A DNA stretch of 64,000 nt from NC_048173.1, one strand, 5' to 3'; positions 5,145 through 63,239 are shown, counted from the first letter of the stretch. Program-made: numbers and translations. The notes: generated by a model not told the origin, from the sequence alone.

Positions 5145-5230
5145 GCATCTGGATAACCCTACCCCACACGGGAAATGTTTTTTACAACACCGACCCATTC
5201 TTTGGGGGTTCAGTCAATCTAATTAGAAAC

Positions 5231-13301: not shown

Positions 13302-13661
13302 ATGGAAAAGTATTACTTCTGCAAAGATGTGGATGCAGCGGCGCCTGAATTGGCGTCTGTCGCTTATCCTACACCTGAAGCAGCAATCCTGAACTACCTG
13401 CTTTACGGACACCCGACAGTGAAGCACATGTGCAAGCTGACACGGCCAGTGTATAGCGACAAAGCTCCTTACCAACTGACGACCAGTCGTCCGAAGGAAC
13501 TCGTGTCGTTGTTCGTCTGTGAAACGGATATCCGTATTTCTGATGACGGAGGGAGAACGATTTACGGTGATGATAATACGGCAATCAAAACGATTACCGA
13601 TTGTCCGATTCGTGACTTGTGTGAAGCGTATCGCATCCCACTGATTATCGAAAGACATTAA
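13302..13661 (+). CDS. Hypothetical protein
   Basis: 119 aa, AAGGA RBS. Confidence 0.7.
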   Translation: MEKYYFCKDVDAAAPELASVAYPTPEAAILNYLLYGHPTVKHMCKLTRPVYSDKAPYQLTTSRPKELVSLFVCETDIRISDDGGRTIYGDDNTAIKTITDCPIRDLCEAYRIPLIIERH

Positions 13662-13668
13662 AAAGGTA

Positions 13669-13701
13669 CCCTATCCCGGTTTTCTGGGATAGGGATTTTT
13701 T
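13669..13701 (+). terminator. Intrinsic terminator (CCCTATCCCGG-TTTT-CTGGGATAGGG)
   Basis: 11-bp stem, T run. Confidence 0.8.
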
Positions 13702-13713
13702 AGACAAACCCGC

Positions 13714-13809
13714 ATGATTCCTCGAAAGTGGTTTTTTGGAGTGATCGTTTTATCTCTTATTATATGCAACTTCCCTTCACGGGGGAGGGGCCTACGGGGG
13801 AGGGGGTAA
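13714..13809 (+). CDS. Possible 31-aa membrane peptide MIPRKWFFGVIVLSLIICNFPSRGRGLRGRG
   Basis: Translated by hand; hydrophobic core and RG tail; no clear RBS. Confidence 0.25.
   Translation: MIPRKWFFGVIVLSLIICNFPSRGRGLRGRG
13779..13806 (+). repeat. ACGGGGGAGGGG direct repeat x2 forming a G5-A-G4-CCTAC-G5-A-G5 quadruplex motif
   Basis: Read directly. Confidence 0.8.
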
Positions 13810-14017
13810 TATGTATATATATGGGGATAATTAGGTAGTAGTAAATTAGATCTATTAATTTAATAAATATTTAGGTTATTAACTTAGTAGATCAGATCCC
13901 AAGTAACTAGATCGATCTAAAAACTTAAAAAAGAAAAGATACCTACCTACCCCAGAAGGGTAGGTAGGGTAGCTATGATCCGATCACTTTATTTAACTTA
14001 CTAAAGACATTCTGATC
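13807..14017. other. AT-rich GATC-cluster island, candidate replication origin
   Basis: 8 GATC in 13849-14017; GATCTATTAATTT 13-mer; very AT-rich. Confidence 0.45.
13928..13973. terminator. CCTACCTACCC/GGGTAGGTAGG hairpin, likely terminator for the minus-strand gene
   Basis: 11-bp stem with an A tract on its left (T tract on minus strand). Confidence 0.75.
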
Positions 14018-15034
14018 CAAGGTAAGTCTTACCGAAGGAGGGAGACGTTCAGTGAACCGTAACTGGAAGAAGTTCCTCAGTTCTCGAACGAGTGTCGGGT
14101 AGTAGCGAGCCATTACCGGGTTGTCGTATTGCACCACATACGCCATAAAGTTCAGGTTCACCAGTTGGTAGAACCAGCGCTGTTGGTTAGTCTGGGAATA
14201 CGATTCGTCAGCGAGTAACCCCAATGCACTGCCTTTGCCATTGAAGTACATCAACAGGTGGTTCATGACGACTCCGGGTAGCGGGTTCCCTTCCTTTAAC
14301 CGTTGGGCGATAATCCGCACATTACGGTCAACGTGTGGGGAGAGCATCGGAATGGGGTAGTCGTTGAACGGGTCATCCTTTTCGATTTCCTGTTCATTGG
14401 CAAAGAAGCGGTGTCGGTTGAATACCGCCAAGTCCATGTAGGATGGCAGCATTCGATAAACAACATACCGATAAAGATATGTATAGAGGTTAATGCCTCC
14501 GTGCTCCTTGTTCCGCTGGTAGTATTTGTAGGCTTGGAAGTATTGCCAGACAAGTGCTACGATATTGATTTCGATATAGCTGATTCCGCGCCCACCGTTC
14601 TTCGTACCCATCTGCCAGTTCAGGTTGGTATAGTCGTGGTAGAGGTAACGAACCGGCTGTAGTTCTCGCCATGGGGTATTGGGGTCGATTGGTTGAATCG
14701 ATAAAGCAATCAACTCCGCTTGCCCTTGTATAAACTCCCCCACGTGAATTTCACCGGGGTGACCGGGAGAGACTAAACGCATGGCGTTGCCGATACTGAT
14801 GAACTTGCGTCGGCATGCCCAATAAATGTCGTCGTACTTCGCGTCGGGTGCGAACCCAATGGTGGCAAGTATCTTGGCCAGTAAGTGGTCGGAATCCACA
14901 CGGGTCTGCATCATCTCGACGCGGTTACGAATACGTCTCTGATTATTTTTTACAACAGATGCAATAGTTATGGACGTAGGGTCTACGTTGCGGGACTTTA
15001 TGATGCTCTGCTGGATATCCGCACTACTGAACAT
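13973..15034 (-). CDS. Conserved Chimalliviridae protein (phiKZ gp52 position), probably virion-associated
   Basis: 353 aa, GAGGAG RBS, TATG upstream; lies between DNA pol and chimallin as in phiKZ-like phages. Confidence 0.6.
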   Translation of the reverse strand: MFSSADIQQSIIKSRNVDPTSITIASVVKNNQRRIRNRVEMMQTRVDSDHLLAKILATIGFAPDAKYDDIYWACRRKFISIGNAMRLVSPGHPGEIHVGEFIQGQAELIALSIQPIDPNTPWRELQPVRYLYHDYTNLNWQMGTKNGGRGISYIEINIVALVWQYFQAYKYYQRNKEHGGINLYTYLYRYVVYRMLPSYMDLAVFNRHRFFANEQEIEKDDPFNDYPIPMLSPHVDRNVRIIAQRLKEGNPLPGVVMNHLLMYFNGKGSALGLLADESYSQTNQQRWFYQLVNLNFMAYVVQYDNPVMARYYPTLVRELRNFFQLRFTERLPPSVRLTLDQNVFSKLNKVIGS

Positions 15035-51594: not shown

Positions 51595-52515
51595 ATGAAC
51601 ATTACCAACGTATTAGGTACTATGCTGCCGAGCTTTGAAAGCTCGCAGTTGAAAGACAGTGTGCGTGATAACGCCAACGCCATCACCAACGATTTGCTGC
51701 CGCAGTATCAAACGCTGCGTGAAGTCATCGGTACCGACTTCAAATCGAGCGACGTCAAAAAGATGTCGAAAGAGATTACCGGGTATCTGCACGACACGAA
51801 ACTCGAACTGAAGAGCCTGCACAATCCGACCATGGTCGATTACATTATCGAAGTCATGAAAAACATCGGTACGTTGCAGGGCTTCCTTATCGAACGTATC
51901 GATGCGGACATCGGCAAAAAGGTGATGACGGCGCAACTGTCATTTAACAAACAAACGCTGCTGCACCTGATTGACCTGATTGAGTTCTACGGTCAGTACA
52001 CCGCGACGTTGATTAACTGGCTGACGCACGAAGAGCTGCAGGCCGTTGACACCAACATCAAAACGCAGGGTGTGGCCCCAACCGATCTGAAATACCTGCA
52101 GATGCGTATGGCGACCTTCGGGGTGGCAACGCGTATTCTCGGTACGCCGGTCAACAAACTGAAAGCGGACTACGGTGAAATTCCGGACGCCATGTTCACA
52201 GAAGAAACCTTCTATGAGCTGACTCGTGCGTTTGGGCAGGACAAGACTGACCCGATGGGGATGTCGTCTGTGCCGTTCCCGCTGTCGGTTATCTACCGCA
52301 TCCGTATGAACATCGCAGAACGTCAGATGGACCATCTGGACGAGCTGAATGCGGCTGCGAAGGCCACTGAACTGCGTCTGATGCTTTACCGTCGTCAAGC
52401 TGTTGACGGTACGGGCGATGCGTACACTGAAGACCTCATTGAAGCACAAGAGAAACGTTTAAACGATCTCAAGTACAAACGTGAGCGTCTGGAGAAGAAG
52501 TATGGATTACAGTAA
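51595..52515 (+). CDS. Internal head protein (SPN3US gp51 position)
   Basis: 306 aa helical; head-gene cluster. Confidence 0.65.
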   Translation: MNITNVLGTMLPSFESSQLKDSVRDNANAITNDLLPQYQTLREVIGTDFKSSDVKKMSKEITGYLHDTKLELKSLHNPTMVDYIIEVMKNIGTLQGFLIERIDADIGKKVMTAQLSFNKQTLLHLIDLIEFYGQYTATLINWLTHEELQAVDTNIKTQGVAPTDLKYLQMRMATFGVATRILGTPVNKLKADYGEIPDAMFTEETFYELTRAFGQDKTDPMGMSSVPFPLSVIYRIRMNIAERQMDHLDELNAAAKATELRLMLYRRQAVDGTGDAYTEDLIEAQEKRLNDLKYKRERLEKKYGLQ

Positions 52516-53044
52516 AGCAGTCCGCGTGATTGACGATTATATGGATAAGCTGCAGAAGCATCCCATCATGGTGCATGATGACGAGGTTATCCATAACGTT
52601 TTAGCCGCTGCTGCCGTTGTTCTCCCGCGCTTCAAACTGATGTGTGTTGAAACAGTGCAGCGCGTATTATATGACGACTTCAAACAGTTAGGGTATACGT
52701 TCAATGCGTTTTATAATGAAACCATTGCATTCGTCCTTGACGGTAAACGTCGTCAGTCAGGAACAGGCAGCTACGCGTCGATTATTCAGGCTTACCTGAA
52801 TGACATCACCAGCACCGTTCACGCCGACGATTTCGGCAGTTTGGGTGCGGCGATTTTAAACTCGACGTTTGGCCGGTCAGGAACGGTACGTTCAATGGGT
52901 CCGATGGATCGCTCAATAGAGCCGGACACTCGCGCATTATCTTATGCAGACCACGAATTACTGGCACAATGGATTACGCGTGTAAACGGTCTCTCCGACA
53001 TGGTTACATCGTTATCCGTTTTCTTGAAGATCGCACGTCCCTAA
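52502..53044 (+). CDS. Head-cluster protein (SPN3US gp52 position)
   Basis: ATG 52502 with GGAG RBS. Confidence 0.65.
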   Translation: MDYSKAVRVIDDYMDKLQKHPIMVHDDEVIHNVLAAAAVVLPRFKLMCVETVQRVLYDDFKQLGYTFNAFYNETIAFVLDGKRRQSGTGSYASIIQAYLNDITSTVHADDFGSLGAAILNSTFGRSGTVRSMGPMDRSIEPDTRALSYADHELLAQWITRVNGLSDMVTSLSVFLKIARP

Positions 53045-53103
53045 GGGGGCCCCTTTCTAGGGGCGTGTAGTTTACTTTGGTTAACCAAACAGGAACCACA
53101 AAT

Positions 53104-54399
53104 ATGAACTTTATGCAAAAACGGGCAGCTCGTGAGTCTATTGAAGACGGCGCTACCGACGCAGGTATCAGCAACATCTCTACCGGCGAAGACAACCTGG
53201 ACGTACAGCTGGCCGAAGTTGCTCCGCTGGACCAACAGATGGATCAGCTGGCTGGCGACGGTGAAGTTCTGGCTGCCGATACCGAACGTACCGAAGCTGC
53301 GATCGACACTGCTGAAGAAGCACTGTCCGCTGGCGAAGAACTGCCAGAAGAAGAACTGGCTCCGGCCATCGTTGCGGGTGAAAGCATCCGTCGTCGCTGG
53401 AAACTGGAAACCCCACAGGTCGCCCGTGAAAGCTTCCGCCGTGGTCGTGGTCTGACCCGTTCCGCCTGCGAAGGCTGGAAAGAGAACCTGAAAAAACTGT
53501 GGCAGGCATTCATCGAAATGGTGAAAACTGTTATCCGCAAAGCGAAAGAGCTGAAGCTGAAATATTTCAACGTCGGCAAATCTGCGGTTAAGCGTGCCAA
53601 AGCGTACGAAGAGAAACTCAAAAAGCTGGGCAGCAAAAAGCAGAAAGACGAAATCTCTGGTAGCTTCGTTGACAAACTGTCGGTCGAAGGTAAATTCGAT
53701 CCTGACCAGTCTGCTTCTATCGCTAAAGACGCAACCTCTGGCAAAGCCAAAGGTGCAATCAGCAAACTGGCTGCGCAGGCTGACAGAGCAGCGCTGTTCG
53801 TTGTTTCCGCTTCTGACGGCGGCGATGCATCCTTCTCTGACCCGGCCGGTGCTGGTGTAGAGCTGTTCGGTACTGCTGGTACCAAACTGCGCGTTCTGCC
53901 GCAGTTCGACGATGCTTCCGGTATCGACAAAATGCAGACCATCATGGCCCTGCCGGGCAACGCCTATATCCAGACCGCTTCTAAAACTCTGGCGATCAAA
54001 GATGGCGAAGCAACCCTGCAGGTTGTTGCGTTTACCACTACTGGTGATGCGAACGATGAGAAAAACGTTCCGACTCCGGATGCTGGCAAACTGCGCGCTG
54101 CAACCTCCAGCCTGAAAGCGATCGGCGAAAACTTCGAGAAAGTCCTGAAAGACTTCGACGCTTACGACCGTGAACTGGAAAAACTGGAGAAAGCTGCGGA
54201 CAAAGCGTCTAAAGCGTTCGATAAAGCGACCGAAGACGGCGACCGCACTCTGCTGTCTAACGCACGTACCGTCGCTGATCAGGCGGTTCGTAACTATCAG
54301 GCTCTGAACCGTGGCGTACAGCACGTAGGTCGTACTGTTATCGCTGGCCTGTCTGGTTACATCGGTGCTGGTATCGGCGCATACGGCAACAGCAAGTAA
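53104..54399 (+). CDS. Abundant head ejection protein, SPN3US gp53-like (paralog of next gene)
   Basis: Acidic propeptide with ARE-S/AGE-S/ACE sites; strong codon bias. Confidence 0.8.
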   Translation: MNFMQKRAARESIEDGATDAGISNISTGEDNLDVQLAEVAPLDQQMDQLAGDGEVLAADTERTEAAIDTAEEALSAGEELPEEELAPAIVAGESIRRRWKLETPQVARESFRRGRGLTRSACEGWKENLKKLWQAFIEMVKTVIRKAKELKLKYFNVGKSAVKRAKAYEEKLKKLGSKKQKDEISGSFVDKLSVEGKFDPDQSASIAKDATSGKAKGAISKLAAQADRAALFVVSASDGGDASFSDPAGAGVELFGTAGTKLRVLPQFDDASGIDKMQTIMALPGNAYIQTASKTLAIKDGEATLQVVAFTTTGDANDEKNVPTPDAGKLRAATSSLKAIGENFEKVLKDFDAYDRELEKLEKAADKASKAFDKATEDGDRTLLSNARTVADQAVRNYQALNRGVQHVGRTVIAGLSGYIGAGIGAYGNSK

Positions 54400-54470
54400 T
54401 TGCTGCGCTGTTAAGATAACCGTCCAACTTCATTAATGAGGGGCCATGTGGCCCCTTAGAGGAATCGATA

Positions 54471-55739
54471 ATGAACTTTATGCAACAACGTGCTGCGCGC
54501 GAATCTATCGCTGACGACATCATCCTGGTTGACGCAGTTGACCTGCCTCAGGATTCTGTTGAAGGTATCCTGGCCGACGTACAGTCTGACACCAAGCAAA
54601 TCGACAGCCTCGACGCTGACGGTCAGCTGATGGCAGAAGATGGCGACGAAACCGAAGCACAGCTGTCTGTGCTGGACGAAGCTCAGGCTGCGGCCGATGG
54701 CGAAACTCCGGAAGACGGTTCTGATCCGATGGAAGCGGACGAAGACATGAGCGAAGATGCTGCGGAAGCGGTTGAAGTGGCTCAGGAGTCTATCCGTCGT
54801 CGCTGGTTCCCGAACAAACCTTCTGTAGCGCGCGAAAGCTTCGGTGCCCAGCACCGTCGTACCGCGGTCCGCGAAAGCCTGTGGGATACCATCAAGCAGT
54901 TCCTGAAGAATGCGATCGAGTGGCTGAAAGCCCAGTACCGTAAACTGAAAGACCGCTGGCTGAAATTCAGCAACAAAGGCAAATCCATCCAGAAAAAATC
55001 CAAAGCTTTCGATGCAGCGATCCGTAAACTGGGCGCTAAGAAGAAAGACGAAGTTTCTGGCGCCTTTGTCAAACAGCTGTCTCTGGGTAAAGCGTTCAAA
55101 GGTAACGACACTGGCGTGCTGAGCCACGAGCTGGGCCGCGTGACCGGCTTCCAGGCATTCCAGACTGGCGTGCTGGACGAAGTGACCAAACTGGTTGACT
55201 CCGTTGCCGCTGCTGGCGCGAATGCGGTTGCTGTTACCGCTATCATGGATCAGGTCAGCAAAGAAGCTGAGAAAGCAACCTCTGACAACGCTTCCATCAT
55301 CGGTGGCAAGTTCGTTAAGGTTGAGAACTCTGAGTCTGACGCTGAAATGGCAACCGTCTCACTGATCGACGACGAAGCCGAAGCTGAATCCGAAGTTCCG
55401 ACTCCGACCATTCAGCAGCTGAACTCCATCAACACCTTCTTCAACAAGCTGGGCATCGAGATCGAGAAACGCGTTAAAGCGTATCACGCTAACGAACAGA
55501 AAGCTGAAAAATACCGTACTGGTATTGAGAAGGTTCTGCGTAAAGTTGACAACATCAAAGTCGGTGAAGACAAAGAACTGACTGAAGCTGTGCGTCAGCT
55601 GCGCGTCGCGGTCAACGGTTGTAACTCTATGGTTTCCTTCGTTGAGCGTGTTTCTGCACACGTACTGTCTACCCTGACTGCCGGTACTAACGGCTATCTG
55701 GCTGCCGGTATCGCTGCGTACGACAAATCCAAAAGCTAA
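54471..55739 (+). CDS. Abundant head ejection protein, SPN3US gp54-like
   Basis: Same MNFMQxRAARESI start and AQESIRRRW...ARES motif as upstream paralog. Confidence 0.8.
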   Translation: MNFMQQRAARESIADDIILVDAVDLPQDSVEGILADVQSDTKQIDSLDADGQLMAEDGDETEAQLSVLDEAQAAADGETPEDGSDPMEADEDMSEDAAEAVEVAQESIRRRWFPNKPSVARESFGAQHRRTAVRESLWDTIKQFLKNAIEWLKAQYRKLKDRWLKFSNKGKSIQKKSKAFDAAIRKLGAKKKDEVSGAFVKQLSLGKAFKGNDTGVLSHELGRVTGFQAFQTGVLDEVTKLVDSVAAAGANAVAVTAIMDQVSKEAEKATSDNASIIGGKFVKVENSESDAEMATVSLIDDEAEAESEVPTPTIQQLNSINTFFNKLGIEIEKRVKAYHANEQKAEKYRTGIEKVLRKVDNIKVGEDKELTEAVRQLRVAVNGCNSMVSFVERVSAHVLSTLTAGTNGYLAAGIAAYDKSKS

Positions 55740-63219: not shown

Positions 63220-63239
63220 CCTAACGAAAAATATTTCAG

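Follow-up and report, generated by a model that had tools for sequence, protein, structure and literature searches.

In Erwinia phage Derbicus (NC_048173; genus Derbicusvirus; genome of 223,950 bp), the 311 bp gap that separates the convergent gp22 and gp23 houses an AT-rich island with a cluster of GATC sites, and the analysis supports the view that this island is noncoding, unique and under selection, with physical properties like those of an origin. The reading tentatively favored here, with a probability of about 0.4, is that the island is the Derbicusvirus-specific downstream module of an orphan noncoding transcription unit on the plus strand, antisense to gp23. The original prediction had taken it for an oriC-like replication origin; the uniqueness of the element, the oriC-like GATC density and the lowest duplex stability speak for that proposal, whereas a specific homology to oriC was not borne out. 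The window is the whole stretch of DNA analyzed, bases 1–64,000 of the genome, and its coordinates are used throughout. The features of the locus are the following:

13302–13661, plus strand: gp22, of unknown function by annotation.
13669–13694, both strands: GC-rich hairpin with T-runs on both sides, from the terminator scan, kept in 5/5 genus members.
13743–13746: the ninth GATC of the locus, 23 nt before the proposed start (−23); CR5 and SNUABM_38 lack it, and Phobos instead carries an inverted repeat with two GATCs.
13752–13766, plus strand: promoter-like motif CTCTTATTATATG with TATG and proposed start G13766, conserved in relatives.
13766–13791, plus strand: 5′ stem-loop from +1, with the inner stem 13770–13776 paired with 13781–13787 and the loop UCAC.
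13781–13806, plus strand: G tract, two copies of ACGGGGGAGGGG (direct repeat D7), G5-A-G4-N5-G5-A-G5.
13807–13940: AT-rich island of 134 bp, 22% G+C, with five GATCs, starting 41 nt past G13766.
13811–13834, plus strand: mini-ORF MYIYGDN*, with an invariant ATG ideally spaced from the G tract.
13849–13893, plus strand: long hairpin, inverted repeat I2 with 18 bp arms, 89% complementary, with GATC 13849 and GATC 13890 at its base.
13908–13919: perfect 12 bp palindrome TAGATCGATCTA, read from the sequence, with two GATCs within.
13942–13968, minus strand: intrinsic terminator of gp23, a 12 bp stem followed by a minus-strand T-run, from the terminator scan, kept in 5/5 phages.
13973–15034, minus strand: gp23 (phrog_3938), conserved in nucleus-forming, phiKZ-like jumbo phages, with no known function.

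The island had been placed between the DNA polymerase and chimallin genes. Its direct neighbors are the convergent gp22 and gp23, but the two named genes were found one gene further out: gp21, upstream of gp22, encodes a family B DNA polymerase, and gp24 (595 aa), beyond gp23, is a probable chimallin, as it weakly matches the nuclear shell protein family (E 1e-7). Next after gp24 comes a gene for an RNA polymerase subunit. Relatives of gp23 are present in 83 phage records; its structure model has a mean pLDDT of 51, too poor for a structure search, and the sequences of gp23 and gp24 gave no match against solved structures. The hairpin at 13669–13694 is the predicted terminator closing the gp21–gp22 operon on the plus strand. 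Since gp22 and gp23 each have their own terminator hairpin, about 245 bp between the two hairpins are left without an obvious housekeeping role. gp22 itself is a small, fast-evolving gene immediately 5′ of the promoter–hairpin element, and its DNA is 60–68% identical to its genus homologues, compared with 70–98% for neighboring genes.

Read on the plus strand, the locus runs from a promoter-like motif CTATTATATG through the +1 stem-loop and the G-rich tract into the AT island. The motif yCTATTATATG is kept in 15 distinct relatives. Late promoters of the phiKZ non-virion RNA polymerase carry TATG and start at G (PMC7598289, PMC12809450), and the Derbicus motif is like them in both respects, an assignment made by sequence only; unlike them, it is longer, unique in the genome and always accompanied by a +1 hairpin. 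A general late-promoter module was discarded, as in Derbicus an AT-rich TATG directly followed by a hairpin is confined to 13766 and TATGCAA shows no intergenic enrichment. TATG by itself is common (816 copies), which, like the TATGCAA result, weighs against the favored transcription-unit reading. The exact 13-mer TATTATATGCAAC has one further genomic copy, at 153,383 on the minus strand, in the 279 bp that separate gp169, a baseplate gene, from gp168 (genome 153,165–153,383, minus strand). Downstream of that second copy, a structured noncoding RNA of about 205 nt is predicted, terminator-ended and with 55 predicted pairs, of which 11 are compensated among Derbicus, CR5 and Phobos; it has no Rfam family match.

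The +1 stem-loop shows covariation over 15 relatives in five genera, with ten distinct stems, 69 Watson–Crick pairs, 14 G·U pairs and no A·C pair. The fold is stronger on the plus strand than on its complement in 15/15 relatives, and the loops are commonly GAAA or UACG. Since the covariation respects one strand, it indicates a plus-strand structure, most simply the 5′ end of an RNA. A minus-strand hairpin or an element of the gp23 3′ UTR was rejected, because the wobble pairs form on the plus strand only. The G tract that follows resembles a ribosome-binding site and also fits a G-quadruplex motif; it is the sole motif with four runs of at least 4 G in the 224 kb genome, both strands included, and it is invariant in the five phages of the genus.

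No conserved reading frame was found 3′ of the purine tract in any relative. A functional peptide from the mini-ORF at 13811–13834 is unlikely, because the length of the frame varies from 3 codons in Phobos to 12 in CR5. A small protein from a membrane-like 31-aa ORF at 13714–13809 was also discarded, because it has no start in CR5 or SNUABM_38 and a broken frame in Phobos. No Rfam family matched the locus near any gathering score, and no tRNA was found there. With a conserved TATG motif, a covarying +1 hairpin and no conserved ORF, the region therefore points to an orphan promoter making a noncoding plus-strand RNA. The plus strand has no U-tailed terminator to define a 3′ end for such an RNA, which counts against the unit, the only hairpin encountered being that of the gp23 terminator in reverse sense; the lack of a strong plus-strand terminator ahead of the chimallin gene, in turn, speaks for it.

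The island had been described as the most AT-rich stretch seen, and it ranks first in the whole genome in both 60 bp and 100 bp windows. It is also the least stable nearest-neighbor duplex of the genome. As a single strand, it folds no better than shuffled sequences (z ~ −1). Phobos retains the long hairpin at 13849–13893: five of its pairs are changed on both sides (compensated), and one U·G pair is invariant on the plus strand.

The eight GATC positions reported by the original prediction (13849, 13890, 13895, 13910, 13914, 13977, 13982 and 14014) are exact, and so are the counts of five per 69 bp and eight per 169 bp. Including the one at 13743, nine GATCs lie within 13743–14017 (275 bp). 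Under one had been said to be expected; at the genome rate, the expectation is 0.15 per 169 bp, with a Poisson P of ~5e-12 (~6e-9 when corrected for the number of windows), so the enrichment exceeds the first claim, because the phage avoids GATC. The window contains 69 GATCs against ~257 expected and the whole genome 194 against ~940 (observed/expected 0.21), GATC being the most avoided 4-base palindrome of the Derbicus genome and CTAG the second (0.30). No other 300 bp window of the 223,950 bp genome has more than three GATCs, and the base composition of the island predicts 0.2 GATC where five are present. A mobile element or repeat family was rejected, since neither the island nor the G tract has a second copy in the 224 kb.

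Three of the eight sites (13977, 13982 and 14014) are coding, inside the final gp23 codons (..LDQ..KVIGS*), and four GATCs sit in palindromes or at the base of a hairpin. The pair at 13977–13985, contained in GTG ATC GGA TCA (V-I-G-S), is invariant in 5/5 genus members despite synonymous alternatives and the genome-wide avoidance of GATC. Elsewhere in the window, 17 GATCs occur in the 3.4 kb at 52084–55460 (gp53–gp56, internal head proteins), compared with 0.8 per kb in the rest of the genome. This stretch has a normal GATC density, without avoidance, and could be a recent acquisition or subject to a different constraint.

Conservation was evaluated over the five sequenced members of Derbicusvirus (Derbicus, EarlPhillipIV, pEa_SNUABM_38, Cronobacter phage CR5 and Phobos). 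Identity to Derbicus in CR5 and Phobos is 99% and 89% for the core (13752–13822), 86% and 81% for the gp21 coding sequence, 80% and 70% for the gp23 coding sequence, and 82% and 56% for the GATC island (13823–13939). The most conserved part is the promoter–hairpin–G-tract core and not the GATC island, in which, given these identities, composition is kept and sequence is not.

Conservation in relatives had been proposed as a check on the GATC cluster, and the enrichment is indeed kept in CR5 and Phobos, with the positions moved in Phobos. GATC has an observed/expected ratio of 0.15 over the first 50 kb of CR5, whose syntenic 300 bp contain eight sites. For Phobos, the first 50 kb give a ratio of 0.10, with 5 of the 22 sites at the syntenic locus (P 3e-7), which is the densest GATC cluster as well as the most AT-rich and CTAG-richest place of those 50 kb. 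The Phobos sites are distributed differently: two in an inverted repeat 5′ of the core (at −35 and −23), one in the island and two in gp23. Since enrichment is kept while positions turn over, with density maintained in three lineages, the GATC words appear to be selected as such at the DNA level. CTAG, the other avoided palindrome, is also densest at this place in Phobos (L044:13552–13736), with four per 300 bp, two of them within the arms of the replacement hairpin.

Outside the genus, SPN3US-like phages (Seoulvirus, Machinavirus, Wellingtonvirus, Erskinevirus and uncultured contigs) have a gap of about 90 bp after the gp23 homologue. This gap carries the promoter–hairpin module and a single purine-rich tract, e.g., GGGGGAGAG, and then runs into the gp23 stop codon in antisense. 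The ten SPN3US-like loci with the promoter module have no unwinding element, their downstream DNA being coding and mildly AT-rich. The AT island is limited to Derbicusvirus, and so are the duplicated G tract, the well-spaced start codon of the mini-ORF and the separate gp23 terminator. After their gp23 homologue, neither Vibrio pVa-21 nor PhiPA3 shows a gap of this kind. A metagenome search with a 25-mer query returned no relatives, and with a 16-mer query only chance matches were found among the 120 matches listed.

The analogy with oriC was partly correct in its details. The 12/13 match to the left 13-mer of E. coli oriC (GATCTATTTATTT in MG1655) exists, and a one-mismatch DnaA box TTATCCCCA is located at 13822–13830 on the minus strand. 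Like oriC, the locus is AT-rich and dense in GATC, with nine in 275 bp compared with 11 in 232 bp for oriC, in the least stable duplex of its genome. Unlike oriC, it has neither a DnaA-box array nor tandem 13-mers, and the features that define a DnaA-type origin are therefore lacking. One-mismatch versions of the DnaA box (TTATNCACA) number 26 in the window, of which one falls in the region, and perfect boxes are absent. The matches to the AT-rich 13-mer (GATCTnTTnTTTT) consist of the one at 12/13 and two at 11/13, located 52 and 133 bp off, one of them on the opposite strand, whereas the 13-mers of MG1655 oriC are in tandem at positions 1, 17 and 32 alongside several DnaA boxes. That host DnaA would bind the box and melt the 13-mer, with Dam and SeqA timing the firing, is thus a very remote prospect, for all that the GATC density, the 13-mer match and the weak duplex suit it: the lone box is altered in CR5 and missing from Phobos, the good 13-mer makes up the left arm of the 13849–13893 hairpin and has been replaced in Phobos, and no similarity to MG1655 oriC extends past 15 bases. 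In addition, replication of the relatives SPN3US and Asesino takes place within a protein nucleus, from which the host initiator is presumably barred; for the same reason, access of host Dam to Derbicus DNA is doubtful, a difficulty shared by all Dam-dependent readings.

In the favored reading, a noncoding transcription unit antisense to gp23, yCTATTATATG would be a phiKZ-type promoter for the non-virion RNA polymerase, with G13766 as the start, and the +1 hairpin would shield the 5′ end of the RNA. A late noncoding RNA would then cross the island, its genus-specific leader, and enter gp23 in antisense, where it could counter gp23 expression by duplex formation or polymerase collision; it may extend toward the chimallin gene. 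The GATCs might be read by host Dam or SeqA, if these reach the phage DNA, or by a phage protein. Stabilizing 5′ structures are known in bacterial RNAs, namely the ompA-type 5′ stem-loops and the Bacillus STAB-SD. The Derbicus element would resemble these in having a stem-loop 0–1 nt from the proposed 5′ end, a purine tract similar to a ribosome-binding site and no conserved ORF. The phage phiKZ is known to transcribe short RNAs, noncoding and antisense, whose start sites are defined (PMC10914365). The noncoding-RNA reading would cover the core, and it leaves the GATC enrichment and the extreme instability of the duplex unexplained.

The weak duplex, along with the quadruplex-prone G tract, the uniqueness of the element and its place beside the polymerase gene, would be explained by a transcript-primed (R-loop) origin of the T4 oriF/oriG type, the main alternative and a possible although on the whole doubtful reading, in which the transcript from G13766 would prime the phage DNA polymerase at the weak duplex. 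The G-rich RNA would stay hybridized to the C-rich template, or the displaced strand would form a quadruplex, and the GATCs would aid melting if methylated or bind an initiator. In T4, oriF (uvsY) and oriG (gene 34) take about 100 bp each and combine a phage-controlled promoter with a downstream A+T-rich unwinding element of free sequence; they lie near switches of the transcribed strand, and the transcript forms the primer (PMC3016281). The Derbicus locus is similar in its promoter-like motif, the variable A+T-rich element tens of bases further on and the nearby strand switch, and different in its phiKZ-type TATG, +1 hairpin, G tracts and GATC cluster. The promoter-like motif lies 41 nt 5′ of the least stable DNA of the genome, the sole strong G-quadruplex motif is on the non-template strand, the composition of the island is kept while its sequence drifts, and the element is unique genome-wide. 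It is also situated next to the DNA polymerase gene, where transcription directions converge, matches oriC in GATC density, and belongs to a phage coding for T4-like replication and recombination proteins. By mere analogy, a promoter followed by a G-run-A-G-run on the non-template strand, where a persistent hybrid or a quadruplex might arise, is shared with the human mitochondrial LSP–CSB II primer region and the ColE1 RNA II origin, systems unrelated to Derbicus. Against an origin of this type, the relatives outside the genus have the promoter–hairpin module without the unwinding element, so the ancestral role of the module was probably not origin firing. Moreover, at known origins the purpose of GATC clusters is to limit firing to once per cycle, a control for which a lytic phage has no need, and host Dam is presumably shut out of the phage nucleus. 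At 222.7 kb, an ordinary gene also has a G tract and an AT-rich leader in front of it, and cumulative GC skew tracks gene orientation and gives no origin signal.

The other explanations, a promoter switch, a packaging site and a minus-strand small RNA, are less likely than both the transcription unit and the transcript-primed origin. The original prediction had also raised a switch sensitive to Dam methylation. On such a reading, GATC methylation would alter promoter output, hairpin extrusion or termination and so report cytoplasmic exposure. The density kept in three lineages with shifting positions fits selection for the word, Derbicus has a GATC at −23 and Phobos a pair at −35 and −23, and four sites sit in palindromes or at a hairpin base. 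Such a switch is nevertheless improbable, as the GATCs other than 13743 lie at +84 to +249, which puts most of them outside the promoter, and the −23 site is missing from CR5 and SNUABM_38; the arrangement thus departs from pap, agn43 and mom-type promoter switches, whose GATCs are embedded in regulator sites that overlap the promoter, with only 13743 near the promoter and not conserved. A scan of the ORFs for the methylase motif [DNS]PP[YFW], a weak test, gave incidental matches only and hence no phage Dam candidate. P1 offers another precedent, since clusters of Dam sites are functional signals at its pac and oriR, and pac has seven GATC-containing hexamers in ~160 bp. Terminase cutting between Dam-site clusters would fit a single site per genome, but it is highly improbable here: only two TGATC(A/G) hexamers are present rather than two flanking sets, the hexamer pattern and the terminase neighborhood of P1 are missing, with the large terminase gene ~22 kb away (216.0–218.1 kb), the same weak motif scan yielded no phage Dam, and the conserved promoter–hairpin module would be left unexplained. 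Finally, transcription could proceed in the opposite direction from an early-type promoter ATATATACATATTAC (13820–13806), giving a C-rich minus-strand small RNA that ends at the 13694–13669 terminator and exposes two CCCCUCCCCC complementary to ribosome-binding sites, with the AT island as the upstream promoter region. The conserved block 13665–13822 coincides with this span, the promoter-like sequence matches the early-type motif TCAGATATATATTAC at 11/15 positions, and the terminator is predicted on both strands. That RNA is distinctly improbable all the same, because all 14 wobble pairs of the hairpin form on the plus strand only, the early motif lacks its upstream half, and the relatives outside the genus have no promoter at that place.

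Two other classes of promoter-like motifs were observed in the genome. The conserved motif aaCGAAAAatAATtTCAGATATATATTAC occurs at 63238 (+) of the window and at genome positions 88837, 154523 and 161150 (+), in AT-rich gaps ahead of gene blocks, and probably represents the early promoters of the genus, those of the virion RNA polymerase. The second, TTTTTACAAC-N10-GATAT(A/G), occurs at 5179, 14947 and 62180 (+) of the window and at genome positions 85605, 175141, 222655 (−) and 222707 (+); the copy at 14947 lies within the 5′ end of gp23 and is aimed at the chimallin gene gp24. The 419 bp noncoding gap at genome positions 222,449–222,867, ahead of gp239, contains two diverging TTTTTACAAC motifs followed by GGGGGGATCAAGGGGGG and by the second most AT-rich DNA of the genome, with three AATTAG(A/G) repeats. 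The layout of this gap resembles that of the GATC island.

The locus unites an orphan promoter-like motif, a hairpin covarying over five genera, the sole strong G-quadruplex motif, the weakest duplex and the sole GATC cluster of the genome. The statement that no origin is established for this group agrees with the literature searched, in which no replication origin is described or mapped for nucleus-forming jumbo phages and no paper on this locus, module or island, or on origins in the group, was found; in the same literature, noncoding RNAs of these phages are hardly studied beyond phiKZ, and no transcriptome turned up for the group to which Derbicus belongs. It is possible, although doubtful, that with this island a nucleus-forming jumbo phage has for the first time an identifiable replication origin, built from a promoter, a quadruplex-prone transcript, the weakest duplex, R-loop priming and a GATC mark. 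If that were true, it would imply a GATC-reading factor on the phage DNA or a sensor of nuclear versus cytoplasmic methylation. The purging of GATC from the genome set against one protected cluster raises the question of whether phage DNA in the nucleus meets Dam, SeqA, MutH or a GATC-specific phage factor. A late antisense RNA on a conserved gene beside chimallin and a T4-like transcript-primed origin would both be instructive outcomes.
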